This document shows positions 1-60,256 of a stretch of DNA of 64,000 nucleotides, one piece after another. Under the pieces are notes generated by a model. That model had not been told where the DNA came from. It made no database searches and was given only the letters and a program-made list of their open reading frames with translations. Location of the stretch: contig NC_067403.1 of NCBI RefSeq assembly GCF_016432865.1, positions 250,418,001-250,482,000 of the forward strand, given 5' to 3'. This stretch comes from Antechinus flavipes (lineage: Eukaryota). The position numbers and the translations under genes are program-made. Within the stretch, counting starts at the first letter, position 1; each line of letters opens with the position of its first letter.

Positions 1-131
1 TTTATAGGTGCATTTGGCAGATTGCCAGTAGTGATTAATCCTTACTTCTGGTTAAGGATAAGTCAATGTGCCTCGGCTAAAGATGCTGGCTTTGCCTCTT
101 TACAGTCTGAATATTTTGTGTAACCATGTGT

Positions 132-189
132 CTAGATTGAAACATCAAGGTGTTCTATATCCATTGGGAGTTCAATATTTGAACTGGTG
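132..189 (-). CDS. Candidate terminal exon of the MS4A-like gene
   Basis: Strong acceptor gtcctcacctttacag before 189. Phase-0 entry gives HQFKY* (stop 174-172). Phase-2 entry gives TSSNIELPMDIEHLDVSI* (stop 134-132). Confidence 0.4.
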
Positions 190-327
190 CTGTAAAGGTG
201 AGGACAGTGTGACTATTGGAGATTGTTTGAATGCATAAAAGGAGCTCAAGGAGGTTGTCTAATTGTAAATATCCCCTAAAGAAGCTCCTCCTCCCTGTTA
301 GGGTGTTCCTTCAAAATTTTCTCTGCT

Positions 328-472
328 GGGGCACCTTGGTGGTGCAATAGATAGAGTATCAGCCCTGAAGTCAGGAGGACCCGAGTTCAAATCTGATCTC
401 AGACACTTAACACTTCCTAGCTATGTGATCCTGGGCAAGTCACTTAGTCCCTATTGTCTCAGGAAAAAAAAA
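328..472 (+). mobile_element. WSINE1-type CORE-SINE
   Basis: ggggcac..ggtggtgcaatagatagag...gagttcaaatctg..cctgggcaagtcactta...ctcagg followed by an A tail. Confidence 0.85.
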
Positions 473-569
473 TTCTCTCCTCTCTCCCCCTTCAGATATA
501 TGTTTTTTCTGTAGAAGGGAAATTTATTTGTCTATCTATGCATTTATTTGTTTATTCATTAATTCATTC

Positions 570-633
570 ACTTATCTATTTATTTATTAAAGTTTTATTT
601 TCAAAATAGATGCATAGATACTTTCCAACATTC
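570..633 (-). mobile_element. L1 3'-terminal fragment (dasyurid-type tail)
   Basis: Reverse complement reads atgaatgttggaaagtatctatgcatctattttgaaaataaaactttaataaataaa, like the L1 tails at 4760-4820 and 30090-30140. Confidence 0.7.
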
Positions 634-648
634 ATCAGAAAAGTAATT

Positions 649-3600
649 TTAAAAGAGCACCTTGATCCGAAAGGCAGAAAGGGCAATAAGGAAGGTTGAG
701 ATACAGAACTCCATAGTGGCCAGCATGAACTTCTCCAAGATAAAGCCCTGGAAAATACAAGATAATAAAAGAAGCATAACAAACATGATTGTGGGGAACA
801 CAGGCCAAAGGAATAGCGGTTGCCATTGGGTTGGCTTTGCCCTTTGGGTGCCTGAAAGAGTCCTTGATAACCTGGCTTCATAGGAGAGCTATGGGAGAGT
901 GAAAGAGGTTGGGGATGGAAGAACCTTAGGGAAATGCCAGGTGGTGACAAAGTAGTTCTATCTTGTTTATTACATCTCTACTGCTTCTCATATTTTTCCT
1001 AGATTCTTGGTCTATTCCACTCATCTACTATAACGTAGTTGGCTAAGTTTTAGTGTTGTTCCTGTCAATACTGTGGGGTTTTCTTGGCAAAGATAATGGA
1101 ATAGTTTGTCATTTCCTTCTCCAGCTCATTTTACAGAGGAGGAAACTGAGGCAAACACATAAGTCATACAGCTGGTAAGTGTGTGAGACCAGATTTGAAC
1201 TTAGGAAGAGGAATCTTTCTTACTTCATACCTGGCACTATCCACCGCACCCCCTAAAACAAGCCAACCTCCTTTGACTAATTATGAACTATGTGGTTACT
1301 GACTCTGAAACTCCCTCAGTTCATTGGAGTATTTTTGAATATAGGATTAAAGATCTATAGAAGGGTGCTGGTGTACCTCACTTCTGAACCCAGTGAGGTC
1401 TGAAAGTTGGGAACACTCCTTGGAGATGTTTCCTGAAATCCTTATATTTTCACTAAAAGGGACCTAAGCTGGCTTCTGAGGCTTTTGTGGTTCAGATAAC
1501 TGTTGCCATGAAAAATGAAAGAGAAAACAAGTGTCAGATATTAAAAAATGGAAACACTTACAGTGACAGTGACTATGTTCTGGTAGCATGTGAAATTTTG
1601 GTGTCCACTCTGGCATTCGTGATTTACAATCATGTTGAGGTGAATTATAATTATCCCAGTCAATGCAGCAAAGGCACTTAGAAAGCTCGTTACCAGGCAG
1701 CATTTCACCTGAAGGAAAGAAATTCATTTTTACTTCCCATTTCTCTCACATGGATTTCCTGCAATCTGGGCCGAATCTCTCTTTGACTCTCAAACTCAAT
1801 TAATCTAACAGAGGACTCTAGCTATCACAATTTCTTAATAAATCTGAATTGAATTTCAATTTGAATAACATCTTGGGACCAATGACTACTCTAAATGGAA
1901 TACTTAAGAAATAATTCTTTTCTCCAAGAAGATATTATTATTTTTGGTTTTGTGCATATCCATTAATCTATCCTCCCCAAGTCAATATAGAAGGATGTAT
2001 TGACAACATTTTTTTCATGGCCTGCATACTGAGAGATAGTGCTTGCTAATCCCTGGAGATAAGAGAAATGTGCTAACCAGTTTGCTTTTTACTTGCTAGT
2101 GGGTGAAAGGGGCAATATTGTTACTCACCAGAGCTTTGGAGGGTATCTCTGAAGAAACTAGTGAGAACATGCCTGAGATGGTGAACTGTTAATTAGAGAA
2201 AAATAAAACAAATATGAGGTCCATTCCCATATTTCCTCCAGCCTTTAAGAATATATATATTTTTGTATTGGCTATATAGTTTTGTTTATTATTGTTATTT
2301 TAAAATTTATTTATTTTAATATTTTTAAAAGTTTGAATCTGCCCTCTGAATTAATCAGCTCTCTATCAGGAGTTGGGCAGCACATTTCATGATGAGTTCT
2401 CAGGAATTGTAGTTAAGAATTCTTTAATTCATTCCTTGAAGCCCCATTTCTCATATGGGAAGAAATAGAAAAGTAAAAAAGAAGGAAAAAAATAATCCTC
2501 CCCAATAATTTTTGCCATTTCTTCTAATGATTAAGTAGCAATATATCAATTTGCATTAATTGAATTTCTTTCAATTGTATAACTCTCACAAGATTAATAT
2601 GGATTCTCCTCCTCCGTAACTAAGTCGAAAAGATGAGATAAAGAGTCAGTTATCCATGATTGAAAAAATACTAAAATGCAGAAATTAATTTTTCTTTAAT
2701 GCTGAGCCTAACATAACATACATTGACTAATTGTTGTCCTTCAGTCTGAAAGAGGACCAAGATGACGTCAGTATGACTGATATGGTTTGCTCTCTATGGA
2801 GTAAATATTGACATTGTCCTTACAGTTGGCACTATTAAACTTGTATGGATAAATAAATTGCCATGTTCATTCACAGGTGAATGTAGGAAAAAGTGTTAAT
2901 CTAGACTTGATGGAAAGCTCATAGAAAGCTCATTGGTTAAGGACCAATTGGTTAAATTCATGAAGAGAAGATGTTTGTGCCCATGATTATTTCTGGGGGA
3001 TAAGATTAGTGAATCTGGTAATTAAAAAGGGTGTTAATAAAAGTGTTATTTTCTTCTAATGAATAATTTTCATTTATACATTAAAGATGTTCAAAAGTTT
3101 TGTGTTCAGACTTGACGTTTATTTTGTGAAATAAACCCAAAATGTGTTCAGAGGCCTCTCTAATCACCACTCTGTGCTATCTCTTGAATCAACTTTTCAC
3201 CATTTATTTCTGCTCAGATCTATAAAGCCTTAAGCTTCATCAGTCATTCATCTTCTTCCTAAAAATGTACCAGCTGATAACAGTTTATTCTATGCCAGTT
3301 TGATAGGGTCATAAAATTCCACTTTAGAAGGGACATTAGAAACAATCAGATCATGTGTACCACAAGATAAATGACTAAACATTTTCTCTGATCTCTACCT
3401 CTCTGAAATATAAACATTTTCTTTGATCTCTACAATCTCTGAAATATAAACATTTTCTCTGATCTCTACAATCTGTGAAATATGAACATTTTCTCTGATC
3501 TCTACAATCTCTCAAATATAAACATTTTCTCTGATCTCTACAATCTCTCAAATATCTCCAAAACAAAAATTAAATATGAACATACAGCAATTTCAGCTGT

Positions 3601-6600
3601 CTCAATGTGCTTCCAGGATACAAAACTAAGTTTAAAAACAATCACAAAGTGGTACCTATTCTCAGCTCACTCAGGATCCCTTTTTGCACTGCCCACTATG
3701 CTGCTGGCAGTGATGCCAAACTAGCCACTTCAATCATTGAACACATGAACTTGCAACAAAACTTAAGGACCCAACACAAGGGGTTTGTCACAACCCCCCT
3801 ATCCTAGATCCCTTTGCCTCTTTCCAGTGTTCTGTAAATTAAGTCTCAAGACTATGGAAGCTTTCATGGGTAGTCCAGCCAGCCGTCACCATGGCAGTAA
3901 TCTAGGTTTCCAAAGCTTTCTGGTGCTGTGGTAGGCAACCCGCAGTGTGCAGCATCCTGTGCTGCAAAAGATTTCTGAAGGAGAATAGAGGAACAGAAAA
4001 AGGAGAAGTCCATATGTCTGGACTTCAGATAGAGCTGAATCCCACATGTGTTCCAATCTTCCAGAACCACAGAGTCAAAAATGACACAAATTAATCCTGT
4101 AGCAACTGAACAGCAACTCTTTGAAGTGCTAGTGCTGGATCAAAGAACTAAGAGCAGAAGGAGCAGGTAGGACCCTAGGACAGGAGATTGTGTATGTAGG
4201 GAGCTGGAGGCACTTTACTAGGCTTGAGTGAAAGGCTCTAGCATCCTTATTGGAGCCACAATTTTTCCTCCAAAATTATTCATGACAGAGATTTCAACTG
4301 GTGAACAGTGAATTACCCAGATTAAAGGAAGGATAAGACAATTGGAAGAAAATCAGGAAAATCACCATCAGAGAGAAGGGAGTTAGGAACTAAATCATAG
4401 TGGAAAATAAAGGGAAAAGGCCATAAATTGTCAAAAATCTTAGGGAAAAGAAAACTTAAAGGCCTTGAACAAAAGCAGATAAATCAACATTGAAAACATT
4501 AATGCAAAAGGATATATCATCCTTATCTACTAAAGGAGTACAGTAAACAAAGGAAAATGATTTTTGTTTTTCTTCCCAGGTTATTTTACCTTTCCAAATC
4601 CATTTTTTCTTGTGTAGCAAGACAACTGTATAAATATGTATACATAGATTGTATTTAACATAGTTTAACATATTTAACATGTATGAGACTACTTGCCATC
4701 TAGGGGAGAAGGTGGAGGAAAGGAAGGGAAAAGTTGGAATAGAAGTTTTTGCAAGGATCAATGTTGAAAAATTACCCATGCATATGTTTTGTCAATAAAA
4801 AGCTATAATAATAAAAAAAAGAAAAAAGGAAAATAATGAAACACTTAATAAAAAAGGACTGTCTTGAATTTGAAGAAAACATGGAACCACAAAACATTAT
4901 TTCTGACTTGTTAAAAAAAATAGACCTATGAAAACAGAATATATGCTCTGAATAGCAAAAATAATGGAAGCAATAAATTTTTTTTTTATCTGTAAGGACA
5001 AGTCTCAGAAAAAGCAAAAGATAGAGTAATTATACAAATATAATGAAGTCCAGGATAATCTAGAAATAAAAAATCACATTAAAAATACATATACTGGGGC
5101 AGCTAGATGGTGCAATGGATAGAGCACCAGCCCTGAAGTCAGGAGGACCTGAGTTCAAACCTGTCCTCAGACACTTAACACTTCCTAGCTGTGTGACTCT
5201 GGACGATTTACTTGACCCCAATTGCCTCAGCAAAAAAACAAAAACAAAAAACCAAAACATAATACCAATCCTATCTCATCAAAAACATATTGATCTTGAG
5301 GACATGTTATATAGAAACTGTCTGAAGATGATGGAGCTCATAGAAGAACATGACAAAACAAAAATCTCCAACAAAGCCTGAATACCACAGTGTAATACAT
5401 AATACAAGAGAAATGCCTGAAAAGAAATACCAATGGAAAAATGTCATAGATCCAAAACCAACAACTTCAACGGCAACTCAAAACCAAACACATTAGTCCT
5501 TTAATTTAACAATTAAATAAAAAATAAGAAGCTCTGCAAATTCTTCAAATATAAATAATTATTCTGTTCCCACCAGGAAACAGAATGAAGATGGGTTTGG
5601 GCCAAATTGAAGGGTGCAATGAGGGGAAGGTGACTCCTGTGGTTTCTCAGGAAAAGAAGATCCTGCAAAGAAGTGGGTGAGAAAGGGTGAGAAATGATTG
5701 TAAAGGAGATGGGAAAAGGAGGCAGAACTTGCTTTGATTGCCCTTATGTTTGAAGAGAAATGTTCTATAAAGAGAGATAGGAACTTTGTGTTGGGTTTTG
5801 TTTGGGGATTTGGTACTTAAAAATGTCCTCTCATTCTACCTAACATGTTTCCCAGATCATTTATTGCATATTCTATTTTCTTTTGGAGCTTTAATATTCT
5901 TTTTCAGCCCCAATGGTCTTTCAAGTAATAAACTTATCTTTTTTGGTTAATTTGCTTTTAGCCCATTGATTGGTAGGAAGAATCCATAGCTGAATAAGTA
6001 ACATACAGCTCTCTAAGGAATAATTTGGGCACATTATCAAGGGAAGATGGTGAGGAGGAGATGAAATGAAGTGCAGGATTTCATGATATTCTTTAGTGAA
6101 ATTTCACTAGTGATCATGGACAAATATCACTTGGCTTTCTAGGTATCAGTTACAAATCCATCTTTTATAGGAAAGACTTTCACTAGATGATGTAAAGGTT
6201 ATTTTTTTTTTCAATTCTATGGTTCTATTTTCTATTGTCTAAGGATTCTAAATGAAACATATCATAATACATTAGAAAAGTAACTTTATTGATGTACTCA
6301 CACTCAGTCCTCCCCAAAGTGCATAGCCTGAAGTAAAGATTTCAAAATGCCCCCTTTCTTGATCTTCTTGTGACATCCATGAGCTCCATTTTGTCCATAA
6401 GCTCGTATTAATCAGTCCAATTAAGATCTGAAGTGCCTGGATGGGAAAAAGAGGCCATGAGGGAAAAGATATGTCAGTAAAACAGTCCCCTTCTGAAGAA
6501 CTTCTAGGTACAATTTGGTCATGGTATCTGTATCATGCAAACAGGGCATTAAAAAGTTGGAGTTAAATCATTAAAATTAGATATAACCTCCACGGGGAAA

Positions 6601-7804
6601 ATTTTTTCCCTATGTTTAAATATAGCCAGGAAGTTCTTTCAATTATTAAATAGTGTTTATCAAAGATGTGCTGTTTTGTCAGAGAGGCTGGGAGCTAGTA
6701 AGTTTTGAGTTCATCCAAATTCAATCTTGTATACTTACTTAGTTGTGAGACCATCGAGTGGTCATTAAGCGCTTGTCTGCCAGTTTCATCATCTACAAAA
6801 TAGGGATATTAATAACACCTACCAGACTTGTCATGAGGAAAAAATGAGATATTTACAAAGTTTTGTAACCAAGAAAGCACATATACATGTTGTCTATCTA
6901 TCATCATCAAGCCCATATGATAATTGGGACAAATATAATACATGCACTGAATTCCTGATCATAAAAAATTAATCAATCAAATTATTATATGATTAGTGCA
7001 AAGTGAGTAGTTGGAGCAAGAGGAACACATCTATTGTGTATAATCATCCTTGAAGAGTTCACAAAGAAATATTTGTTGAAATATTCTTAGTGAATAATTA
7101 TCACTATTGTTAGGAACTGTTTGACTGCTGTCTCATGGTTCTACCCAGAATTCCTGGAATTGATTACTCAGATTGCTTAGGATGAAGTTCCCTATCCATA
7201 AAACCACTTCCTGTTCTCTCTCATACAAATGACCTGTTCTGCTCCCAAGTCACTATGCCCTCCCATGCCATGTCCATCCTATTTTTCATAAAATATCTTC
7301 TGTTTTATACTTCTCCTTCTACTCCTCTCACTGCCTCCTGCCAGAAGACCCAGCATCTACTCCTAATAAATTTCTTTACTCTTGGATCTACCTTCTCTCA
7401 TGGCTCCTGAGATAACCCCACAAGAGTGAGAAAACATTCTGCTCTTCACTGCTACTTCCAGACTTCTTAATAAATCAGTCACTATCCCTTTGTTGTTCAA
7501 TCCAACTAGATATATTAGTTTATTTCTATCATTTTAGTTGTTCTCTATGATCTCTCCCTCTCCCTCTCCCCCCACTCCCCCAACATTGATCATTCTTCTT
7601 TCCTTCTCAGGGAATTAACTATCTCATACTCTTTCTCTCTATCCCAAGTTTGGTCCATTTACTTGAGGGACTCAATTTGCTTGTTGAAATCCCCTAAATC
7701 ACCATTCTCATTCTTGATTTTAGTGATCTATACCTTCATACCACTTCAGTTCTCTGATGAATTTCTTCTCCTCCCCTCCTTTCTCTTCTCCTCTCTACTC
7801 CTAT

Positions 7805-7877
<73 letters not shown>

Positions 7878-10359
7878 TCTCTTTTCCTCTCTTCTCTGTC
7901 TCTCCCCTCTCTCTTTCTCTGTATCTCCTTCTTTCTATCTCTGTCTCTGTATATTTGTATGTCTCAATCCATACCTAGCAAACTATTTATAAATTATTGA
8001 GTATTTGATAAACCAGATTGAATTGAGTGAAAATTTGGCTCTAATTCTAGATGGCTCTTTAGGAGTAGCAGGAAGCAATCTCACAATGGTAATGTTAGGA
8101 TTTCTATAAAGATGATTTATTTTTACTTCTAGGAGCCAAGATGGTATAGTAAATTTCTGCAACTTTCTCATAGTGACCTTCAAACAGCCATAAAATAGTG
8201 CCCCTCAAAACAGTTTTTGAAGCTAAGAAACTTGGAAGATTGAAGGGAAGGTCTATTTTGGGTAAAAGGGCAATGCAGTCTCAGAGAGGAAGTATCCCTA
8301 AAAGTAAGTAGCAAGCCTCACCTCAGCAAATCAACAGTAGATTCTGACCCCCGGTGCAGTGGAACAGGCAAATAACACATCAGAAACCACTTTGTGCCTC
8401 AGCATATCCAGCTGAATAGGGAGACTCCAGTTCTGAGAACCTCTATGTTCTTAAATATAGCCTTGACCAAATAGGCAACCTCTAGGGTCCAGACCACCAG
8501 GTGCTTCAGTATATCTTTGGGGAATGCAGAAATACCCCCACAACCTCAATACTCTAGACCCCAGCACTAGGACCCCAGCTCAGCATCAAGTAAGCTACCA
8601 TACTTCTTTGGACTCCAGCAGTACCATTTATCCCCACCCCACCTCTCAGGCTAGCACTAGACATGGGGGTCTCCTGTGACCTCAAGGCAATATAAGTGTG
8701 GCATCAGGTTAATAGGCAAGGACTGTATCCCTGAGAAGCCTGAGGCAGTGTTCCTTTAAGCCCACATGCAAAGCTCAAACTCAAAAGAAAATGAAAAAGA
8801 TGAGCAAAAACAACCAAAAAGGAATAGAAAATTATTGCAGTGACAGGGAAGATCAAGACAAATTCAGCAGAAGACAATGATGTCAAAACACCTGTGGGCA
8901 AAACCCTAAAGAAAAATTGGAAATGTTCTCAAACAAAAAAAGAACTCACAGAAGAGCTCAAAAAGGAACTTAAAAATCATATAAGATAGGTAGAAGAAAA
9001 ATTGGGGAAATAAATGAAAGTGTTGCAAAAGACTTATGCAAAAAAAAAAGGCAACTTGGAAAAAGAAGACAATTGCTTTAAAACTAGCATTAGCCAAATG
9101 GAAAAGGAGACACAAAAATTCATGAGGAAAACAACTTACAAGATACAATTGGCCAATTAGGAAAGAAGGTATAAAAGCTAATTGAGGGAAACTGTATTGA
9201 GGGGGAAAAAGCCCAAACAAATATGGTTTAACAGTTTATTTTCCCCAAAAGTGAATATGCAAAGCAAAATTTACAAAGCATCCATGAGGTGCTTTTCTCA
9301 TCCTAATACAAGTTCTTCTGTTCCTGTAAATTTCTTAATGCTGATAATTTGTCCATCTAGCTAAATTATGTAATAATAATATTCTAATATGTATAGAACA
9401 AATAACTGGCATTTTGTGGTCCTTAAAAGTTTTTTTAAAAACATTTATATAATACATATGCTTAAAGGAAATAAATGTTTGAAAAGTCAAAATGGAACAG
9501 AGATACACTAGAACAAAAATACTTTTAATATTTCTGATGTTCCTTTTCCTCTACTTTTCCCTCTCATGCCACCTCATTCCAGTCTTCCTTCTCTTCTCCT
9601 GTTCTCTCCTTTCCATTCCTCTAATCTCTTCCTCTCTTCTCTCCTTACTCTTTGTTCCATCTATCATTTTTTAAAAATATGAAGCTCAGATTTTTTTTTG
9701 ATAGTTAAGCAATCCAAGGTTTCTTTATCTCCTTTTTTCCTAGCCAGGAGCTCTAATGGGCACCATTTAAAAAAGTTTATCAAGACCTGAGAATAACAGC
9801 TTTCTTGTATCATTTTATTTTCTGAGAGTTATTCATGTAAGTTGCAACCTCCATGCAAATCCTCAATATTCTATTTTTTGAGCATATACAAGTATCTTCT
9901 CATGAACCTTGTCCTTGCTTTTATCCTTGACCTTTATTTCTTCTCTGAAATATTCATCTGTTTTTACAATTACTGTTAGAAGAAGTTAAGGAAAAAAATA
10001 AAGCATGTCTAATACTTGTAGGAGGTGATATTCTCATGTAATTTAAGGGAAAACAAAAAGCTTTTTTATTGCTGTTTTTTAAAAAAATATATCCCAAATC
10101 CAACAATCCCAGGGATCTTCCATGATGAATGTCATTTCTCAAAGAGCAAAATCCACATCTCCTAGATGACAGTACTTAGATGGAGACAATTCTAAGGAAA
10201 TAGCAGTTGACTTACACCAAGCAATTGTCCTACACTCTTCAGGAAACTCGTCAGCTTATCCTGTGTGCTCGATGGAGACTTGGCAGTCTCTTCTTCCTCT
10301 GGAATGATGTAATCATCACTGGGGAGATCTTCGGTGGACCGCTGTACATGTGATTCCAT
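649..10359 (-). CDS. MS4A-family (CD20-like, membrane-spanning 4-domain) gene, multi-exon, about 193-195 aa; orthologue not assignable
   Basis: Five minus-strand exons with GT-AG boundaries, all phase 0, splice into one open frame: MESHVQ...KLTSFLKSVGQLLG | ALQILIGL...SGYALWGGLS | FTISGMFSLVSSEIPSKAL | VKCCLVTSFLSAFAALTGIIII...C..C..VTVT | GFILEKFMLATMEFCISTFLIALSAFRIK. Motifs (FLK..LG, QILIG, GY..WGG, FxISG, EFCIS) and the 57-nt TM2 exon match MS4A architecture. The 3' end is ambiguous. Confidence 0.88.
661..747 (-). CDS. MS4A-like coding exon 5 (TM4; 29 aa, or read-through to the TAA at 651-649)
   Basis: Acceptor ttatcttgtattttccag. Translates to GFILEKFMLATMEFCISTFLIALSAFRIK. Donor AAG|GTGCTC is weak; read-through gives VLF*. 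Confidence 0.85.
1066..1253 (-). mobile_element. MAR1-type CORE-SINE
   Basis: ggggttttcttggcaaagat...ctccagctcattttacaga..gaaactgaggcaaac...gatttgaact. Confidence 0.8.
1562..1708 (-). CDS. MS4A-like coding exon 4 (TM3 plus ECL2 with two Cys; 49 aa)
   Basis: Acceptor tttctttccttcag, donor GTAAGT, 147 nt. Translates to VKCCLVTSFLSAFAALTGIIIIHLNMIVNHECQSGHQNFTCYQNIVTVT. Confidence 0.9.
2129..2185 (-). CDS. MS4A-like coding exon 3 (TM2; 19 aa)
   Basis: Acceptor tttttctctaattaacag, donor GTGAGT, exactly 57 nt. Translates to FTISGMFSLVSSEIPSKAL, matching the MS4A FIISGSLSIAA...K.L exon. Confidence 0.9.
3377..3555. repeat. Minisatellite, 36-bp unit x5 (aaacattttctctgatctctacaatctctgaaatat)
   Basis: Head-to-tail units start at 3377 (35 bp), 3412, 3448, 3484 and 3520. 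Confidence 0.95.
4556..4830 (+). mobile_element. L1 3' UTR fragment with A-rich tail
   Basis: ggggagaaggtggagg...gttgaaaaattacccatgcatatgttttgtcaataaaaagctataataataaaaaaaag. Confidence 0.8.
5096..5257 (+). mobile_element. WSINE1-type CORE-SINE, full length
   Basis: ggggcagctagatggtgcaatggatagagcaccagccctgaagtcaggaggacctgagttcaaa...ccccaattgcctcagc followed by an A/CAAAA tail. Confidence 0.9.
6302..6436 (-). CDS. MS4A-like coding exon 2 (TM1, ECL1, start of TM2; 45 aa)
   Basis: Acceptor ctttttcccatccag, donor GTGAGT, 135 nt. Translates to ALQILIGLINTSLWTKWSSWMSQEDQERGHFEIFTSGYALWGGLS. Confidence 0.9.
6690..6900 (+). mobile_element. MIR-like SINE, degraded
   Basis: cagtttcatcatctacaaaatagggatattaataacacctacc CORE motif. 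Confidence 0.6.
7108..7422 (+). mobile_element. Possible solo LTR
   Basis: TGT...ACA ends and AATAAA about 50 nt from the 3' end. No TSD found. Confidence 0.3.
7808..7871. repeat. (TC)n microsatellite in a pyrimidine-rich tract
   Basis: Perfect TC run seen directly. Confidence 0.95.
8132..9190 (+). mobile_element. Degraded L1 5' UTR and ORF1 start (in MS4A intron 1)
   Basis: Begins ggagccaagatgg (L1 5' end). Lys/Glu-rich coiled-coil-type ORF1 remnants with stops from about 8790. Confidence 0.7.
10216..10359 (-). CDS. MS4A-like coding exon 1 (cytoplasmic N-terminus, 48 aa)
   Basis: ATG at 10359 and GTAAGT donor (+ acttac 10210-10215). Acceptor tctctttggtacag lies 16 nt upstream of the ATG (exon starts at 10375). 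Ends FLKSVGQLLG, like the MS4A FLKxExKVLG motif. Confidence 0.8.
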
Positions 10360-17233: not shown

Positions 17234-17387
17234 NNNNNNNNNNNNNNNNNNNNNNNNNNNNNNNNNNNNNNNNNNNNNNNNNNNNNNNNNNNNNNNNNNN
17301 NNNNNNNNNNNNNNNNNNNNNNNNNNNNNNNNNNNNNNNNNNNNNNNNNNNNNNNNNNNNNNNNNNNNNNNNNNNNNNNNNNNNNNN
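17234..17387. other. Assembly gap (154 N)
   Basis: Run of N after a CT-rich tract. Confidence 1.
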
Positions 17388-22777: not shown

Positions 22778-23728
22778 ATGGTCAACTCCACTGTCATCAC
22801 TGAATTCCTCCTCATGGAATATTCCAATATACGGAAGATACAGATATTACACGCTGTGCTGTTCCTGCTGATTTATCTGATAGCTCTGATGGGGAATCTC
22901 CTCACTATCACTGCTATTGCCACTGACCCACACCTTCACTCTCCAATGTACTTTTTTCTGAGTAATTTATCCTTGTTGGATGTTGGTTTTATCTCAGTGA
23001 CTCTTCCCAAATTCATTGTGAATTCTCTGATTGGAAGCCGATCCATCTCTCTCTTGGGCTGCATGGCCCAGATTTTTCTCTTTATATTCTTTGGTTCAAC
23101 AGAAATTGCTTTACTCATAACCATGTCTTATGACCGATTTGTTGCCATTTGTCATCCACTGCATTATGGGATGACCATGACACCAGCCAGGTGTCTCTGG
23201 GCAACAGCAGGCTCATGGCTTTGTGGATTCATCTATGCTGCTATACACACAGGGAACATGTTCCGATTACCCTTCTTAGGATCCAATGAAATCCACCAGT
23301 ATTTCTGTGATATTCCTGATGTCTTAAGGATCGCATCATCTGATGTTCTGCATACTGAGTTTGTTCTGCTTGTGGCAGGGTCAGGTTTTTCTTTATTCTG
23401 CTTGGTTTTTTTATTTGTGTCCTATGCCCATATTTTCTCTAGTGTGTTCAAGATACCCTCTGTTGAAGGTCGGTATAAAGCCTTATCTACCTGCACTCCC
23501 CAGCTGATTATCTTCCTCTTATTTCTCCTTACGGCAATTTTTGCAGCCCTGAAACCCCCATCAGATTCGACAATTCAAAATCTTTTTGTGGCAATGTCCT
23601 ATACAATAGTCCCTCCATTTATTAATCCCATTATTTATAGCTTGAGGAACCAGAGGATCAAGGTTGCACTGAGTAGAATAATTAAGCAAATCTTTCTACC
23701 AAAGAAGAGAATGTTCATCCTAGAGTAA
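22778..23728 (+). CDS. Olfactory receptor (class II, OR14-like), intact, 316 aa (OR-1)
   Basis: Single-exon 7-TM ORF with N-glycosylation site NST, LHSPMYFFLSNLS, MSYDRFVAICHPLHY, HQYFCD, KALSTC, PPFINPIIYSLRN. HTGNMFRLPF and STCxP suggest family 14. Confidence 0.96.
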   Translation: MVNSTVITEFLLMEYSNIRKIQILHAVLFLLIYLIALMGNLLTITAIATDPHLHSPMYFFLSNLSLLDVGFISVTLPKFIVNSLIGSRSISLLGCMAQIFLFIFFGSTEIALLITMSYDRFVAICHPLHYGMTMTPARCLWATAGSWLCGFIYAAIHTGNMFRLPFLGSNEIHQYFCDIPDVLRIASSDVLHTEFVLLVAGSGFSLFCLVFLFVSYAHIFSSVFKIPSVEGRYKALSTCTPQLIIFLLFLLTAIFAALKPPSDSTIQNLFVAMSYTIVPPFINPIIYSLRNQRIKVALSRIIKQIFLPKKRMFILE

Positions 23729-34105: not shown

Positions 34106-35255
34106 ACCCAGGGAAAAAAGATAATCTCTTCCCTAAAGGAACTTAAATTTTAATAGGGGAGACATGGACAAAAATATATAGGAAACAGCTATTTCTAGGT
34201 AAAATAAAGGATTAGTATAGAGAAGGCATTAGAATTAAGTGAGTGGAATTATAGCTTATTTACTTATTTACCCTTTCTAGTTCATAGATAATTTTAAAGG
34301 ATTTTTTTCCCTACGAAAAGTAAATTCTCTGGATTTAGGTGAATAGGGATCAAACAAGCTAATAAAATAGAACCCAGAAGCCATCTTTGAGCACTTGAAC
34401 TCCAAGAGAATGGCAGTTGCTGCCATTAAAACAAAATGATGTATGGTATTGGAAAGAGCTAGGAGTTAAAGACACTGGGTTCTTTTTCTGATCTTTACAT
34501 TAGCAAATTGTCATTTGCCATGAGACACGTTGCTTTACTATGGATTCAGTAAAAATAATCAGTAAAAAAAAGGTGTTGATAGGAAAAATATTTAAGGAGT
34601 TATATAACTTTAAAATTATTTGTTTTGTTCAGTAACTAAGATATCGGAATTTTGACTTTCAATGTGAATTAAGGAGAAATTTGAGTCATTCACAAAATAT
34701 GAGCCTTCAAAATTAGGGAAAAAACCATGTAAGTACTAGAATTTGAAATCTATAATGGAATGATTTAAACATCATAACACATTTCATATTTTCTTGTAAT
34801 TTTGATAATTCAATTAATAGGTAATATATTTTTATGTTTATATATCATATTATTAAATATGACATAATTTTTATTATATTTTATGTTATATATTAAAATA
34901 TAATAAGTGTTTTTATCTTCTCCTCTCCCTCAGTTTTCTTGCCTGTATTTTGGAGACATTCCTCTTTGATCTATTTGAATTTGTCTTTCCTCATAGTTGC
35001 TCTTCGTCTGCCCTGCTGTCATCAGTTTATGTAGTTTATGACAGTTTCTGTAATATCAGCTGAATTCATGGATCAGCATTAAAATCAGCGCCTTCATTTT
35101 CAGCATTGCTCCAGTTGTGCATAGAGTAGATGGAACCTGATTCTCTTTGTGAACTTTTTGAAAGGAGGAGACAGGGAATTTCGATTTTCTCATTTCTTTG
35201 CTACCCTATTTTGGTCATACTTTCAATCTCGAAAATTCACTGGGAGCTAGCAAGT

Positions 35256-36232
35256 ATGGTCAACTTCACCATCATCACAGAATTTCTCCTTATCAATTTT
35301 GCCAGCATTTGGGAGCTACAGGTCCTTTATGCTATGCTTTTCATTCTGATTTATCTATCAACTTTGATGGGGAATTTCCTCACCATTATTGCTATTGTCA
35401 CCGACCAACACCTTCATGCCCCAATGTACTTTTTTCTAAGCAATTTATCCCTGTTGGATATGTGTTACATCTCAGTCACTCTTCCCAAATTCATTGTTAA
35501 TACCCTGATAGACACTCCATCCATCTCCCTCTTGGGATGTATGGCTCAAATATTTTTAATTTTGTTTTTTGGAGGAACAGAATTTGCTCTCCTCATGACC
35601 ATGTCCTATGATCGCTTTGTGGCCATCTGCTACCCCTGCACTATGGGGTCATCATGACACGAGCCCGGTGCTTTTGGGCAGCAGTTGGCTCCTGGTTCAC
35701 TGGCTTTGTCTATTCTGCCCTCCACACAGGTAACATGTTTCGTTTGCCCTTTTCAGGGTCCAATGTGATCCACCAGTTTTTCTGTGATATACCACAGATA
35801 TTGCGGGTTGCAAACTCAGATGTATACAATACTGAATACTTGTTACTTGCCATAAGCTCGTGTTTTCTATTATTGTGCTTTGTCTTTTTAATTATATCAT
35901 ATGCTCATATCTTCTCCAGTGTACTCAAGATCCCCTCCATGGAAGGACGCTACAAAGCCTTATCTACCTGTTCCCCTCACTTGATTGTCCTTCTCTTATT
36001 TCTCCTTTCTATAATTATTTCAGTCTTGGGGCCGACATCAGACAGATCATCAGTTCAGAACCTTCTTATTGCAATGGCTTACACAGTACTGCCCCCATTC
36101 ATGAACCCTATCATTTATAGCTTGAGAAACCAGAAGATCAAAGTCGTGTTGATTAAGATAATCCGAATGGCTTTATTTCTCAAGAAGGACGTGTCTAGTC
36201 CTAAGAAAATCAAGAGGACAAGGAATGTATAG
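35256..36232 (+). pseudogene. Olfactory receptor (OR14-like) with a single 1-bp frameshift (OR-2); may be a sequencing error
   Basis: ATG at 35256 (MVNFTIITEFLL). The 5' half is in ORF 35130-35657 and the 3' half in ORF 35654-36232. Adding one C to the run at 35633-35636 restores ICYPLHYGVIMT and a 325-aa frame. Confidence 0.9.
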
Positions 36233-40380: not shown

Positions 40381-42609
40381 GGAATGTTAAATAATAAAAA
40401 TTTTAAAAGTGAATTAGGAATTATGAATAAATGAATTAAACCTGTAAAAAGCATATTCATTGTGACATCCCATTATCCTGTGAAAATTAGTCTATCATAC
40501 TATTCACATCTTATTATTTGCATCTATTCCTCTGTTTGGACTCTTTGCCTGGAGAGCAAAGCCATGCTGCTTTTTTTTTCCCCTGGGGGCACCCAACACA
40601 GTCTTCTTTTAATTTTCTACAAGTTGCACTGTCTTTGCATTTTTCCTTTATCCCCTTGTGCTAAGTGCTGTTTCCCCTTCATCATCCCTTCTAATTTTTT
40701 TACACTTAACAGAATTCCTGACATACAAGAGGCATTCAGTAAATGTTTATTGACTATTGATTAAGATGCTTATGGACTGACAGACTCCCAATAGCCTATA
40801 CTTATGTGGCTGATATTTTAATAAGACTAAAGGGAGAACTTTTTTCATTGGATTGTTTATTAAAAAATGCCCTAATTATTCTCAAGGGATGGGTGAAAAA
40901 ATTCATAGCAACCCAGAGCATGATGATGTTGATCTTAAATACTCTGGTGATTTCACAGCACCTTCTACAAAGTACATTGGGCAATATATATCATCAAGTT
41001 ATAAAAAATCACCAAAATCTCCATAGTGATAGCAAGTTCAGAGGTTTAGACTTGAGTACCTTGACACATTTTTGAGTCTGCCCATCAGAATGGAATAAAT
41101 TGATAAGGAATGAGATAATATCCAGATTATGTTTAGAAATATAAGTAGATGGAGAACTGTGACAATGGCAACATATACTGGAAAGTATGCACATCAGAAC
41201 GAATAACTCAGGTATTTTCATTGTGATTGTGATTATTTTTCTTTGTGACATGACTATGCTCAGGTGCTTAATGAATGAAGTAATGACCATTGGGATGATT
41301 GTTCCATGATTCTTTTTTGTGTGTGTGAGAAGTGGTTTGGTCCAGTAGAGATAGTATGGTGGGCTGAAATTAAGTAACACCTTAATCTGAATTCTACTTC
41401 TGGCTTTTCTGAGCTGTATAATCTTTTCAGCTTTCCTCTAAGAATATGTTCATTCCTCCTGTGTGTATCAGTTGTACATGCTTATTTACTTGCTTTTTCC
41501 TCCCAGTTAACTCTAATTTCATGGAGGTCGGGGATTTCTTTACCTTTTTTTGCAATCCCATGCTTACCACAGTATCTGGGACATAATCGACACTTAATAA
41601 ATACTTGTCAGTTTACTGCAAGTTGACTATGCATAAGCTTTAACCTCTTTGAGCCATTACCATACCTGTAACGTGTGCATAACATTATCTTTGTAACAGC
41701 CTTGTTGAGGCTCATCAGAGATGATATAAAAACATACTTTGTGAATATCAAGAGTCCTAATGACTAATGAAAAAATGAGTCATAATTATTGTTCTGATAG
41801 TTATTAATTAACTGAAATTTGTACCACTGAACACAAGGAGAGCTGGGCAAGAATAACAATTCCTTATTGCATTTTGTTTATTTGTAGCATAGTCTTTATG
41901 ATGGTATACGCTAAAGAAAACTGGAAGACATAGGAACTCCATATCGATTCCAACTTTACATTTTTGTTTTCCCCATCATTTTCTGTGTAAATTATTTTGC
42001 TGCAAAAAAGATGAGTTGAACTTTTGAATAAATTCACTGGAGAGATGCTGAATTTGGAAGCAGAAGATAATTATTTAACTCTGGCTTTGTAATTTACAGA
42101 CTGGAAAAGTTAGAATCAATTATTATACGTCTCTGTTGTATAAATAAAGCACTTGGAAAATTGAACTTTAAACTTCCAGTTTTGAGTTTCTGCTCCTATG
42201 ATCATGTTTGAAAGAGATATTCAGTAGCGATGATGGACTTCACTGAGAGCCTCAGCAATTCCCCAGCTATTTTCAGATAAAGTGTATGATCTTCAGTCGC
42301 TCTTTCTGGCGGAAGCTACTTTTGAATGACTTGAAGTAGATGCTAGCTGGTAGATTTTCTAGGTTCTTCTGACTGGAAAATGGGTTAAGTATTTAAAACT
42401 CTGTTCCAGAATTATTGGATGCAGCTCTGCCTTCAGCTCATTTTGGCCTTAAAATATCTTGTAATTTTGCTTTAGTTTAGGTTAAACGGGACAAAATAGT
42501 TTTCAAGTTCTATCTAAAGTATTTTAATTCTTTCTCGTTTTCAACACATTTTTACTGCTACTCATTGGGTTATTTGTTTTTAGTTAAATTACAGCACTGC
42601 AGCAGGAGG

Positions 42610-43566
42610 ATGGGCAACTTGTCAGTCATCACAGAATTCTTCCTCATGGAGTTTTCCGGCACGCGTGAGTTGCAGGTCTTACACGCTGCGCTGTTCTTGC
42701 TGATTTACCTGGCAGCCCTCCTGGGGAATCTTCTCACCTGTGCTGCAATTATCACTGAGCCACACCTTCACTATCCTATGTATTTTTTCCTGAGTAATTT
42801 ATCCCTTGTGGATATTGGCAACATCTCCGTTACGCTTCCTAAATTCATTGTGAATTCTTTGTGTGGCGTTCAGTCCCTATCCCTCCTGGGCTGTGCTGCC
42901 CAGATGTTCTTTTTTCTCTTTTTTGTAGCCACAGAGTTTGCTTTGCTGGTGGCCATGTCCTATGACCGCTTCGTGGCCATCTGCCAGCCCCTCCACTACA
43001 GCATCATCATGACTCCAGCACGTTGTCTCTGGACAGCAGCTGGCTCGTGGCTCAGTGGGCTTCTTTATTCAGCTGTACACACAGGGAACATGTTCCGCCT
43101 TCCCTTCTCAGGCTCCAATGTGATCCACCAGTTTTTCTGTGATGTCCCTCATCTTTTGCTAGTCTCAGCCTCTGATGTGTTTAATACTGAGTTTGTATTA
43201 ATTGTGGCAAGTTCGTGTCTTTTGCTTTTCTGCTTTGCCTTTTTAATTGCATCCTATGCTCGCATCTTCTCCAGTGTGCTCAAGATTCCTTCTGTGGAAG
43301 GACGCTACAAGGCCATTTCAACCTGTTCCCCTCAGTTAATGATTCTCATCTTATTTCTTGTGTCTGGAATGATTGCTGTCCTCAGGGATGCATCAGACAC
43401 ATCACCTGTCCAAAACCTTTTAGTTACAATGGCTTATACCACATTACCTCCCCTGCTGAACCCTCTCATCTATAGCCTGAGGAACCAGAAGGTCACAGCT
43501 GCCATGGGCAAGATGATCAAAAGGATAGTTTTTCCCTACACTTCCTTGAAAATATTAAAAAATTGA
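42610..43566 (+). CDS. Olfactory receptor (OR14-like), intact, 318 aa (OR-3)
   Basis: True ATG at 42610 (MGNLS); the ORF track extends it to an upstream TTG. Motifs LHYPMYFFLSNLS, MSYDRFVAIC, KAISTC, PPLLNPLIYSLRN. Confidence 0.96.
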   Translation: MGNLSVITEFFLMEFSGTRELQVLHAALFLLIYLAALLGNLLTCAAIITEPHLHYPMYFFLSNLSLVDIGNISVTLPKFIVNSLCGVQSLSLLGCAAQMFFFLFFVATEFALLVAMSYDRFVAICQPLHYSIIMTPARCLWTAAGSWLSGLLYSAVHTGNMFRLPFSGSNVIHQFFCDVPHLLLVSASDVFNTEFVLIVASSCLLLFCFAFLIASYARIFSSVLKIPSVEGRYKAISTCSPQLMILILFLVSGMIAVLRDASDTSPVQNLLVTMAYTTLPPLLNPLIYSLRNQKVTAAMGKMIKRIVFPYTSLKILKN

Positions 43567-44193: not shown

Positions 44194-45009
44194 TTGGGAC
44201 ACTAATGCATTGTTGGTGGAATTGTGAATACATCCAACCATTCTGGAGAGCGATTTGGAACTGTGCTCAAAAAGTTATCAAACTGTGCATCCCCTTTGAT
44301 CCAGCAGTGTTACTATTGGGATTATATCCCAAAGAGATTTTAAAGAAAGGAAAGGGACCCGTATGTGCCAAAATGTTTGTGGCAGTCCTTTTTATAGTGG
44401 CCAGAAACTGGAAACAGAGTGGATGCCCATCAATTGGAGAATGGCTGAATAAATTGTGGTATATGAATATTATGGAATATTACTGTTCTATAAGAAATGA
44501 CCAGCGGGATGATTTCAGAAAGGCCTGGAGAGACTTGCATGAACTGATGCTGAGTGCAATGAGCAGCACCAGGAGATCATTATATACTTCCACAACAATA
44601 CTATATGATGATCAATTCTGATGGACATGGTCATCTCCAGCAATGAGATGAACCAAATTAATTCCAATAGAGCAGTAATGAAAGAAACCAGCTATACCCA
44701 GTGAAAGAACTCTGGGAGATGACTGTGAACCACTACATAGAATTCCCAATCCCTCTATTTTTGTCTGCCTGCATTTTTGATTTCCTTCACAGGCTAATTG
44801 TACACTATTTCAAAGTCCAACTCTTTTTGTACAGCAAAATAACTGTATGGGCATGTATACATATATTGTATTGAACTTATGTTTTAACATATTTTACATG
44901 TATTGGTCAACCTGCCATCAAGGGGAGAGGGTGGGGGAAAGGAGGGGAAAAATTGGAACAAAAGGTTTTGCAATTATTAATGCTGAAAAATTACCCAAGC
45001 ATATATCTT
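44194..45009 (+). mobile_element. 5'-truncated, relatively young L1 (ORF2 C-terminus and 3' UTR), copy 1
   Basis: ORF 44205-44621 (HCWWNC...CPSIGEWLNKLWYMNIMEYY) is L1 ORF2p C-terminal sequence, followed by a G-rich 3' UTR. Confidence 0.9.
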
Positions 45010-51241: not shown

Positions 51242-52034
51242 GAGTATCCACTGTTGCTAGTATTATAGATATTGGCATTTTTTTTTAAATAAGAGAGAAA
51301 CTGCATTTAGAGTCAGAAATCTACTTTATTACTAATAGTCTTTGTTACTTTGTACAAAACAATGAATCAGTATGAACTCTTATTTACTATCCTATGGAAC
51401 AATAACCTAAGTAATATTAGGTTAAATTGTGTAATACTTGAATACTTTCAAACAGCATCCTGAATGTAACTTATGAAATATGCAATAAAAGTATATATTT
51501 CCCTCATCCTAATCTTTCATTCTCTTTCTATGAGATTTATAGATAGATAAATATAGACATAAGTATATATAGATATGATATTTATTTACATATATACTAA
51601 TGGATATATACAAACATATGTATTTATACATATACATATGCATGTATTTATATATGTATACATAAATATGTGATCATAAACATGTGTGTGTCTGTTTATG
51701 TGTGCACATGTTGACATGCATGAAATCCATTTCCACTCTTAATGGATATAGCCTTTATTATCTTTGTAGTGGTATTATTCATTTTCCTAATGTTCATCAT
51801 GTATAACTTCTTCTGGATATTCTATAGGGTTAAGTATTTAAAACTCTGCTCCAGAACTATTGGATGCAGCTCTGTCTTCAGCTAGTTTTGGCTTAAAATC
51901 TAGTGTAATTTTGCTTTTGTCCAGGCTTAAGTTTCTATCTAAATAAATATATTGATTCTTTCTCATTTTCAACACATTTTTACTGCTACTCATTGGGTTA
52001 TTTGTTTTTAGTTAAATTACAGCACAGCAGTAGG

Positions 52035-52991
52035 ATGGGCAACCTGTCAATCATCACAGAATTCCTCCTCATGGAGTTTTCCAGCACGCGTGAGCTGCAG
52101 GTCTTACACGCTGCGCTGTTCCTGCTGATTTACTTGGCAGCCCTCCTGGGGAATCTTCTCACCTGTGCTGCAATTATCACTGACCCTCACCTTCACTATC
52201 CTATGTATTTTTTCCTGAGTAATTTATCCTTTGTGGATATTGGCAACATCTCCGTTACGCTTCCTAAATTCATTGTGAATTCCTTGCATGGCGTTCAGTC
52301 CTTGTCCCTCCTGGGATGTGCTGCCCAGATGTTCTTCTTTCTCTTTTTTGCATCCACAGAGTTTGCTTTGCTTGTGGCCATGTCCTATGACCGCTTCGTG
52401 GCCATCTGCCAGCCCCTCCACTATAGCATCATCATGACCCCAGCACGTTGTCTCTGGACAGCAGCTGGCTCGTGGCTCAGTGGGCTTCTTTATTCAGCTG
52501 TACACACAGGGAACATATTCCGCCTGCCCTTCTCAGGATCCAATGTGATCCACCAGTTTTTCTGTGATGTCCCTCATGTTTTGCAAGTCTCAGCCTCTGA
52601 TGTGTTTAATACTGAGTTTGTATTAATTGTAGCAAGTTTGTGTCTTTTGCTTTTCAGCTTTGCCTTTTTAATTGCATCCTATGCTCGCATCTTCTCCAGT
52701 GTGCTCAAGATTCCTTCTGTGGAAGGACGCTACAAGGCCATTTCAACCTGTTCCCCTCAGTTAATGATTCTCATCTTATTTCTTGTGTCTGGAATGATTG
52801 CTGTCCTCAGGGATGCATCAGACACATCACCTGTCCAAAACCTTTTAGTTACAATGGCTTATACCACATTACCTCCCCTGCTGAACCCTCTCATATATAG
52901 CCTGAGGAATCAGAAGGTCACAGCTGCCATGGGCAAGATGATCAAAAGGATAGTTTTTCCCCACACTTCCTTAAAAATATTAAAAAATTGA
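52035..52991 (+). CDS. Olfactory receptor (OR14-like), intact, 318 aa (OR-4), close paralog of OR-3 and OR-5
   Basis: ATG at 52035. Same motifs. The 3' third is almost identical to OR-3. Confidence 0.96.
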   Translation: MGNLSIITEFLLMEFSSTRELQVLHAALFLLIYLAALLGNLLTCAAIITDPHLHYPMYFFLSNLSFVDIGNISVTLPKFIVNSLHGVQSLSLLGCAAQMFFFLFFASTEFALLVAMSYDRFVAICQPLHYSIIMTPARCLWTAAGSWLSGLLYSAVHTGNIFRLPFSGSNVIHQFFCDVPHVLQVSASDVFNTEFVLIVASLCLLLFSFAFLIASYARIFSSVLKIPSVEGRYKAISTCSPQLMILILFLVSGMIAVLRDASDTSPVQNLLVTMAYTTLPPLLNPLIYSLRNQKVTAAMGKMIKRIVFPHTSLKILKN

Positions 52992-53628: not shown

Positions 53629-54443
53629 TTGGGACATTGATGCATTGTTGGTGGAACTGTGAATACATCCAGCCATTCTGGAGAGCGATTTGGAACTATT
53701 CTCAAAAAGTTATCAAACTGTGCATACCCTTTGATGCAGCAGTGTTACTATTGGGATTATATCCCAAAGAGATTTTAAAGAAGGGAAAGGGGCCTGTATG
53801 TGCCAAAATGTTTGTGGCAGTCCTTTTTATAGTGGCCAGAAACTGGAAACAGAGTGGATGCCCATCAATTGGAGAATGGCTGAATAAATTGTGGTATATG
53901 AATATTATGGAATATTACTATTCTATAAGAAATGACCAGTGGGATGATTTCAGAAAGGCCTGGAGAGACTTGCATGAACTGATGCTGAGTGCAATGAGCA
54001 GCACCAGGAGATCATTATATACTTCAACAACAATACTATATGATGATCCATTCTGATGGACATGGTAATCTCCAGCAATGAGATGAACCAAATAAATTCC
54101 AATAGAGCAGTAATGAATTAAACCAGCTACACCCAGCGAAAGAACTCTGAGAGATGACTGTGAACCACTACATAGAATTCCCAATCCCTCTATTTTTGTC
54201 CACCTGCATTTTTGATTTCCTTCACAGGTTAATTGTATACTATTTCAAAGTCCGACTCTTTTTGTACAGCGAAATAACTGTATGGACATGTATACATATA
54301 TTGTATTGAACTTATGTTTTAACATATTTTACATGTATCGGTCAATCTGCCATCAAGGGGAGGGGGCAGGGGGAAGGAGGGGAAAAATTGGAACAAAAGG
54401 TTTTGCAATTATTAATGCTGAAAAATTACCCATGCATATATCT
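53629..54443 (+). mobile_element. Same L1 insertion duplicated with the segment, copy 2
   Basis: Same position relative to the OR stop and same truncation point as copy 1. ORF 53637-54056. Confidence 0.9.
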
Positions 54444-57486: not shown

Positions 57487-57640
57487 NNNNNNNNNNNNNN
57501 NNNNNNNNNNNNNNNNNNNNNNNNNNNNNNNNNNNNNNNNNNNNNNNNNNNNNNNNNNNNNNNNNNNNNNNNNNNNNNNNNNNNNNNNNNNNNNNNNNNN
57601 NNNNNNNNNNNNNNNNNNNNNNNNNNNNNNNNNNNNNNNN
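57487..57640. other. Assembly gap (154 N)
   Basis: Run of N. Paralogous position contains a TA-rich tract. Confidence 1.
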
Positions 57641-59138
57641 NAAGTCATTAAGGGTACTGAACTTTGGCAATGCCTTTCAAATAGTTGAATTATGAGACTA
57701 AATGATAAGCTATTTGGAAGGTTGGAGAATTAATTCTAATGTTGATATGGCAATTCAGTTTTGTGGGAAGTTGGAAAAGACACTGAGGTTTAGAAGAATA
57801 TTTCTAAGTGGAAGGAAAATACAGATCTGTGTATCTATGTATTTATATAGCTATCTATCCATCCATCCATCCATTCATTTATCCATCCATCTTTTCATCT
57901 ATCTATTAATCACTGTTCATCATCTCATTATGTCTATATTGATCATCTCTATATATACATATATGCGTGTATATACACTATGTCATCTACATAAAAATAC
58001 ATACAATATATATATTTATACATGTGTTTATATAGATATATACATATATGTATTTCTGCATATACTTCCCACAATATCTCTGACTGTTTATAGCATCCAT
58101 CTATATACTCATATATTTCTCTATCATCTATCTCAAAACATGTATCTGTATATCAATAGATCTATTTCTGTCTCTACTTCCTATCTCTCTCTCTCTATCC
58201 TTATCACCTCCATTTCTACCTGTACCTCTATCTCTGTCTTGCCCATTTATATTAGCAGACATAGTTTTCTCTTCAGCATGTCCCTGTAGAAATATAATCA
58301 CAGCACCATTCCTAATTCTTTTTCAGTCATTTTTTCAAAGCTATATTACCTGTTGCTAATATATGATATAATATAATATAATCCCATAATTAGCTATTAA
58401 TTCATCCATATAGTAGCTGACCTGGATAGATTCCTTTTACATAAGCAGAAATAGTAGGCAGAAATTATAGCAATCATAAAAGTTGACTTTGGTAGGGGCA
58501 ATGCAGATTATATTGTTCAAAGCACTAATTAATAGATGCTCTACCTAATGCCAAAAGGGAGAGATGAAAAGGGAACATTAAGGGTGAAATGGCTAGGAAC
58601 GGGTAAAAATCAACTCTAAAAATCAGATCTCTTGAACTCCCACTTCTATCATCTGTGCATTAAACCAGATGAAAGAGCATCCTAGTCTATTTTTTTTTCT
58701 GACTTGGGGAAAGATGCCTTTCTGTAAAAGAGATGAACCTTATCCAATTTATTTACAGAGAAGATACTCATTGAGTGACGATAAAAAGGTAATTTATTGG
58801 TGGGGTTTTTTACCCTGAAGAACAAAAAAAGTTTCTGCCAGCCATTTAAATTTGGGGGCAGAAATGGGACATCTGTTGCCTTTCTAAAAGCAAAGTCATA
58901 ATTGTGGACAGTCTTAGCAAGAAGGAGGAGTACATTGGAATAGTAAAATGTTGATCAATTGCTTACTTTTAAATTTGGAATCAGAGATTTTGAAATACCT
59001 GGAAAGTGCTTAAAGGAGTAAACCCCAGAGATGAATTTAGCAAAGAAAACAAATAAAAATATGAAGAATATTTTTAAGTGATAACATTTCCACTCTTTCA
59101 CATTTTTTTTTAGTTTAAGCCTATGATGTAAATTTTAA

Positions 59139-59187
<49 letters not shown>

Positions 59188-60256
59188 TGTATTTTGAATA
59201 TGGGAGAAAATAATTGAGCAGCTAGGTAGCATTGTAAAGAGTGCTAGACCTGAAGTAAGGAAGACTCCATTTCATGAGTTCAAATCTGACCTCAGACACT
59301 TAATTGGCAATGTTATCCCGGGCAAGTCAATGTTGTGTGCCTCAGTTCCTTATCTCTAAAATGAACTGGAGAAGTATATGGCAAAACAATCTAGTATCTT
59401 TGCTCAGAAAACCCCATATGGAATCATGGAGAATCAGGACTGAAAAAGTGATTTAACATCAACAGAGTATTCACTGTTGCTAGTATTATAGATATTGGCA
59501 TTTTTTTTAAATAAGAGAGAAACTGCACTTAGGGTCAGAAATCTACTTTGTTACTAATAGTCTTTGTTACTTTGTACAAAACAATGAATCAGCATGAACT
59601 CTTATTTACTATCCTATGAAATAATAACCTAAGTAATATTAGGTTAAATTGTGTAATACGTGAATATTTTCAAATAGCATCCTGAATGTAACTTATGAAA
59701 TATGCAATAAAAGTATATATTTCCCTCATCCTAATCTTTCATTCTCTTTCTATGAGATTTATAGATAGATAAATATAGACATAAGTATATATAGATATGA
59801 CATTTATTTACATATATACCAATGGATATATACAAGTATATGTATTTATACATGTACATATGTATGTATTTATATATGTACACATAAATATGTGTTTATA
59901 AACATATGTGTCTCTGTTTATAGGTACACATGTTGACATGCATGAAATCCATTTCCACTCTTAATGGGGATAGCCTTTATTATCTTTGTAGTGGTATTAT
60001 TCACTTTCCTAATGTTCATCATGTATAACTTCTTCTGGATATTCTACAGGGTTAAGTATTTAAAACTCTGCTCCAGAACTATTGGATGCAGCTCTGTCTT
60101 CAGCTAGTTTTGGCTTAAAATATAGTGTAATTTTGCTTTTGTTCAGGCTTAAGATTCTATCTAAATAAATATTTTGATTCTTTCTCATTTTCAACACATT
60201 TTTACTGCTACTCATTGGGTTATTTATTTTCAGTTAAATTACAGCACTGCAGCAGG

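Follow-up and report, generated by a model that had tools for sequence, protein, structure and literature searches.

The ITAM of rodent FcεRIβ (MS4A2) reads Y219EELHVY225SPIY229SEL. Lyn is bound by its first tyrosine, Y219; FcRγ signalling is amplified by the β chain, whereas the middle tyrosine, Y225, mediates negative signalling via SHIP-1 (PMC3353146). Eutherian FcεRIβ chains of solved structure (8k7t_B, 8y81_B and 8ywa_B) have four TM helices and a pair of cysteines in ECL2, and their C-terminal exon, which begins ...KVP(E/D)D, carries an ITAM with a six-residue spacer. CD20 (MS4A1, Pfam PF04103) has the same fold and the motifs QIL.G, GY..WGG and.ISG. Table S1 of a 2010 survey lists MS4A2 for platypus and none for opossum (PMC2826416), and a single-cell study of the sugar glider uses a gene labelled 'Ms4a2' as a mast-cell marker (PMC12002115).

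The locus compared with these systems lies in a stretch of 64,000 nucleotides of Antechinus flavipes DNA, referred to below as the window. We consider it likely that positions 10359 to 661 of the minus strand hold the first five exons of a marsupial MS4A gene that is orthologous to genes described as FcεRIβ-like in RefSeq and encodes an FcεRIβ-type subunit, with the sixth exon situated outside the window. The initial annotation had joined five minus-strand exons (10359-10216, 6436-6302, 2185-2129, 1708-1562 and 747-649; 144, 135, 57, 147 and 99 nt) in phase 0 throughout, and this architecture was confirmed: AG acceptors and GT donors bound the exons, all ten splice dinucleotides are intact, and the donors of exons 1 to 4 are GTAAGT, GTGAGT, GTGAGT and GTAAGT. 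The spliced five-exon frame contains no premature stop, frameshift or indel. Its length had been given as 190 aa; the joined frame in fact comprises 193 codons plus a stop, and 190 is the count up to a conserved splice donor at 661|660, at which the fifth exon is ended in the following list.

10216-10359, minus strand: coding exon 1, 48 aa from the ATG at 10359; covers an acidic cytoplasmic N-terminus and the beginning of TM1; donor GTAAGT.
6302-6436, minus strand: coding exon 2, 45 aa; TM1 (ALQILIGLIN), charged ECL1 and start of TM2 (GYALWGGLS).
2129-2185, minus strand: coding exon 3, 57 nt, 19 aa; remainder of TM2 (FTISGMFSLVS).
1562-1708, minus strand: coding exon 4, 49 aa; TM3 together with ECL2 and its cysteine pair (HECQ...FTCY).
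661-747, minus strand: coding exon 5, 87 nt, 29 aa; TM4 (MEFCISTFLIALSAF) up to ...RIK, where the conserved donor follows.
649-660, minus strand: first 12 nt of intron 5, earlier taken as 'VLF' and a stop.
579-599, minus strand: three AATAAA hexamers, 50-70 nt past the read-through stop; candidate intronic poly(A) site, by sequence only.

None of the five exons appears in the list of open reading frames of at least 90 aa, which bears out the proposal that such a track would miss the gene. Each of the MS4A hallmarks attributed to it was located in the spliced peptide, namely FLK..LG, QILIG, GYALWGG, FTISG (on the 57-nt exon), the two ECL2 cysteines and EFCIS. Two RNA runs contained some 10% of the words sampled from the stretch, a figure that proves nothing. 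Intron 4 contains a marsupial SINE-like repeat at about 1100-1290, and the window is interrupted by two runs of N, at 17234-17387 (154 bases) and 57487-57641 (155 bases).

Membership in the CD20/MS4A family was examined with the Pfam CD20 profile (PF04103), for which the cut-off is 27.9 bits. Scored as separate pieces, Antechinus exon 2 gave 17.6 bits over profile positions 4-39 and exon 4 gave 14.9 bits over positions 64-101; the two matches are collinear and sum to about 32 bits, each singly being below the cut-off. The marsupial orthologues described below score 49-70 bits against the same profile and the same cut-off. Hydropathy (Kyte-Doolittle, 19-residue window) shows clear peaks in the Antechinus protein at about 38-61, 109-142 and 163-189, whereas the Gly/Ser-rich TM2 (about 80-104) is sub-threshold there and reaches 1.35-1.77 in the orthologues. 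Both ECL2 cysteines are present in Antechinus and align with those of FcεRIβ; among the orthologues the first is invariant and the second is found in four of five. An Atlas structure model of the Dromiciops protein was nearest to a TMEM176A cluster, which belongs to the CD20 family (TM 0.60). Neither exon 2 nor exon 4 alone gave a relevant match in the PDB, and exon 2 alone gave no usable match in the Atlas. Judged by these sequence comparisons, the gene is a member of the CD20/MS4A family, in agreement with the initial annotation.

The spliced peptide was then compared with known proteins. Against a 230-aa Dromiciops protein it is identical at 134 of 191 positions, without gaps (BLASTP, E 2e-94). 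A search of 1.84 billion representative proteins with exon 4 by itself recovered the same Dromiciops protein and nothing else (E 1e-10), over residues 113-161, which is exactly the place of that exon in the spliced model. RefSeq orthologues were found in Dromiciops (XP_043828020.1), Trichosurus (XP_036621120.1), Gracilinanus (XP_044537215.1) and Macrotis (XP_074083753.1), all four named 'high affinity immunoglobulin epsilon receptor subunit beta-like'; UPI0004435549 is a further orthologue. Identity to the Antechinus protein is 72.5% for Trichosurus, 70.5% for Dromiciops, 59.6% for P0003, 57.0% for Gracilinanus and 55.8% for Macrotis, and, model artefacts aside, the alignments of all five orthologues run across all five exons without gaps at 56-72% identity. 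The start methionine aligns with M1 of every one of the five. When the window was set beside the loci from Dromiciops (L001), Gracilinanus (L002) and Macrotis (L003), exon lengths of 144/135/57/147/87 and canonical splice sites proved common to all four species. The five-exon gene is real, far beyond anything expected by chance.

Word-index protein searches with the Dromiciops sequence, with a profile of the orthologues and with residues 44-140 of P0005 (E up to 10) yielded these five marsupial proteins and no others, and the Antechinus protein itself is absent from the searched collections (5.8 billion proteins). The RefSeq marsupial FcεRIβ-like proteins share with Antechinus the start codon, the exon lengths, the phases and a weak donor after the TM4 exon; they include an ITAM-bearing exon, whereas the window displays exons 1-5 only. 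The Antechinus gene is an ordinary member of this already annotated group, seen without its last exon. The earlier view that it is too divergent to be assigned, and may be a marsupial-specific novelty, is not supported, given the orthologues annotated in four marsupials and their profile, which matches FcεRIβ at E 3e-23 and CD20 at E 2e-6.

Two of the RefSeq models depart from this common structure. The Macrotis model (XP_074083753.1, 201 aa) skips the TM4 exon, yet the genome has an intact 87-nt exon with AG/GT boundaries at L003:19223-19309; the omission may be an error of the model or point to an isoform that skips the exon. In the Trichosurus model, exons 4 and 5 are joined through six additional residues, LSCILQ (residues ~163-168). 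These six residues are the translation of a conserved polypyrimidine tract directly before exon 5 (748-765 in the window), which indicates that the acceptor chosen in that model lies 18 nt further upstream.

The 3′-end of the gene differs from that originally drawn. After '...SAF(Q/R)IK' the orthologues continue as VPE(D/E)K...ENPYEDLLFQPDPY(D/E)EI...EGY..., and their sixth exon reads VPEDKS...ENPYEDLLFQPDPYDEI.... In Dromiciops, exon 5 ends in AAG with a donor of GTGCCC, and the sixth exon lies 2.1 kb further downstream; the homologous position in the Antechinus window is AAG|GTGCTC at 661|660. This donor is weak in each species compared, being GTGCCC in Dromiciops, Gracilinanus and Macrotis and, with one base changed, GTGCTC in Antechinus. 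Given the exon 5/6 splice in the orthologues and the homologous donor, 'VLF-stop' represents read-through into intron 5, and the assertion that the final exon runs to a stop at 649 does not hold, since the last 12 nt (660-649) are the beginning of that intron. A tail exon was sought by local BLAST in the remaining 660 bp (window positions 1-660) and none was found; with intron 5 measuring 2.1 kb in Dromiciops and the sixth exon following at a distance of about 2 kb in other species, the last Antechinus exon is expected beyond position 1, off the left edge of the window. The main product is predicted from these alignments not to end at 649, and to be spliced from 661|660 to a sixth exon outside the window.

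An in-frame stop occurs four to five codons into intron 5 in all four species (window 649-675; L001:20120-20150; L002:17505-17535; L003:19295-19325). The combination of a conserved weak donor and an early intronic stop could provide for a regulated isoform, and retention of intron 5 would yield a protein without the ITAM. The AATAAA-containing stretch past the read-through stop was also considered as a conserved intronic poly(A) site, and this idea is unsupported: neither the stretch nor its hexamers are conserved in Dromiciops.

Resemblance to individual family members was assessed by searching a profile of the five orthologues against all solved structures. FcεRIβ chains scored 86, 83, 60 and 50 bits (best E 2.7e-23) and CD20 chains 31 bits (E 2e-6), a lead of about 55 bits among the solved MS4A structures. 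The Dromiciops protein alone gave 71 bits on FcεRIβ versus 23.5 bits on CD20, which is thus the more distant of the two from the marsupial proteins and, unlike the orthologues, has no ITAM. The profile alignment to FcεRIβ spans the whole protein including its tail, with ...IKVPEDKS..PYEDL placed over rodent ...KVPDDRLYEEL; the tail alone had no match in the PDB. In all five orthologues this tail contains a canonical ITAM, in which six residues separate an invariant E-x-x-Y-E-D-L from Y-(D/E)-(E/V)-I. The marsupial proteins therefore resemble eutherian FcεRIβ in the four TM helices, the ECL2 cysteine pair, the beginning of the C-terminal exon and the six-residue ITAM spacer. They differ from it in their low overall identity, a longer and charged ECL1, and a shorter cytoplasmic N-terminal part. 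A further difference concerns the ITAM itself, which as YEDL-LFQPDP-YDEI has no middle tyrosine corresponding to Y225 of rodent FcεRIβ (PMC3353146).

On balance, these similarities suggest that the gene encodes the FcεRIβ (MS4A2) of marsupials; to solved FcεRIβ the protein is much closer than to CD20. Its most likely function, predicted from an ITAM read in the orthologues, is that of an FcεRIβ-type ITAM signalling subunit and not of a chemoreceptor. Because the orthologue ITAM has the spacer of FcεRIβ, the best-supported mechanism is a subunit of this type that would recruit a Src-family kinase. In mast cells and basophils, such a four-pass subunit would sit beside an Fc-receptor alpha chain and the FcRγ dimer. 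Lyn or another Src-family kinase would phosphorylate its ITAM, which may then amplify or tune the receptor signal.

The principal competing interpretation, which we regard as possible but rather unlikely, is that the gene is an ITAM-bearing paralogue of the marsupial lineage, or a pro-orthologue of MS4A2/3/4/6/7, that does not serve as the β chain of an IgE receptor and may have other partners. The RefSeq name carries only the suffix '-like', and a feature search of the Atlas ranked 'MS4A4A-like' and 'MS4A3' clusters at the top (0.95), these being the nearest named ones. The 2010 survey, with its MS4A2 in platypus and none in opossum, is also consistent with a paralogue (PMC2826416), as is the lack of the middle tyrosine that is typical of eutherian FcεRIβ (PMC3353146). 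Among solved MS4A proteins, however, FcεRIβ leads CD20 by the margin given above over the full length of the protein, its tail position and ITAM spacing are identical to those of the marsupial proteins, and it was chosen as the naming homologue in four separate RefSeq annotations. No second β-like protein was found, which counts as weak evidence since the search was word-based.

If the protein is a true FcεRIβ, the negative-feedback tyrosine would be a eutherian addition. That marsupials possess an MS4A adaptor with a canonical ITAM devoid of the inhibitory middle tyrosine, be it true FcεRIβ or a separate, marsupial-only immune adaptor, is a broader proposal that we advance tentatively and hold to be improbable as it stands. 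What the analysis does provide is a corrected gene model and label rather than a new system. The Antechinus genome gains an FcεRIβ-like gene that was missed by ORF tracks and apparently by the protein catalogue too, and marsupials are seen to have a conserved ITAM-bearing MS4A, whereas the 2010 survey listed no opossum MS4A2 (PMC2826416). This is a modest addition to comparative immunology, bearing on IgE, on signalling in mast cells and on how the β-chain ITAM evolved.

Selection on the five exons was estimated from pairwise comparisons. Between Antechinus and Dromiciops dN/dS is 0.53 (bootstrap CI 0.33-0.83); the remaining pairs give 0.59-1.03, with values of up to 0.89-1.03 against Gracilinanus and Macrotis. 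TM segments are lower, at 0.30-0.71 over all pairs and 0.30 for Antechinus and Dromiciops, and exon 2 against Dromiciops gives 0.27, while the N-terminus and loops range from 0.5 to 1.6. Purifying selection thus acts on the TM core, while the N-terminus and loops drift almost freely. Across the four lineages no indels or stops have accumulated, about 4.6% of single-base changes being of a kind that would make a stop. The gene is fast-evolving but maintained, and overall constraint on it is weak.

These estimates bear on a second interpretation, in which the Antechinus copy is decaying or inactive, having recently become a pseudogene or lost its tail exon, and its five exons are still open by chance. 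Along its own branch Antechinus has a dN/dS of about 0.74, calculated from 27 changes only (7.5 synonymous and 19.5 non-synonymous), and at the frequency of stop-generating changes noted above only about one stop would be expected on the branch under neutrality, so that the open frame is compatible with neutral evolution. The altered donor (GTGCTC against the conserved GTGCCC), the position of exon 6 off the window and the absence of the protein from the 5.8-billion-protein collection would also fit inactivation. The undamaged reading frame, the full set of splice dinucleotides, the retained cysteine pair and conserved motifs, and the TM-core dN/dS of 0.30 against Dromiciops argue against it, and inactivation is accordingly judged improbable.

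Olfactory receptor (OR) genes adjoin the locus and are all that is seen on its 5′ side, the 3′ side being off the window; no other MS4A exon was detected in the window or, for Dromiciops, in the 10 kb that follow the gene. Five of them occur on the plus strand from 22778 onward, upstream of the 5′-end of the gene.

22778-61210, plus strand: OR cluster, with open reading frames at 22778-23728, 42565-43566, 51993-52991 and 60215-61210.
35130-35657 and 35654-36232, plus strand: OR gene split by a frameshift into a pair of open reading frames.

In Macrotis, as in Antechinus, the FcεRIβ-like gene has an OR neighbour: an OR that is 73-75% identical precedes the orthologue by 7 kb, and the two are likewise divergently oriented. 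The adjacency is conserved synteny and offers no evidence for a chemosensory role. The eutherian MS4A cluster is also located near OR genes. That the gene encodes a chemosensory MS4A of olfactory neurons, a role at which the initial annotation had hinted, is very improbable: the five OR genes beginning 12 kb upstream, their adjacency in Macrotis and the fast extracellular loops (non-TM dN/dS up to 1.6) could be cited in its favour, but the first two amount to synteny shared with eutherians, the invariant cytoplasmic ITAM of the orthologues and the match to FcεRIβ indicate immune signalling, and no support for the hint was found. The last three intact OR copies are tandem duplicates, 90-95% identical to one another, and an L1-ORF2-like fragment follows both the OR at 42565 (44205-44621) and that at 51993 (53637-54056).
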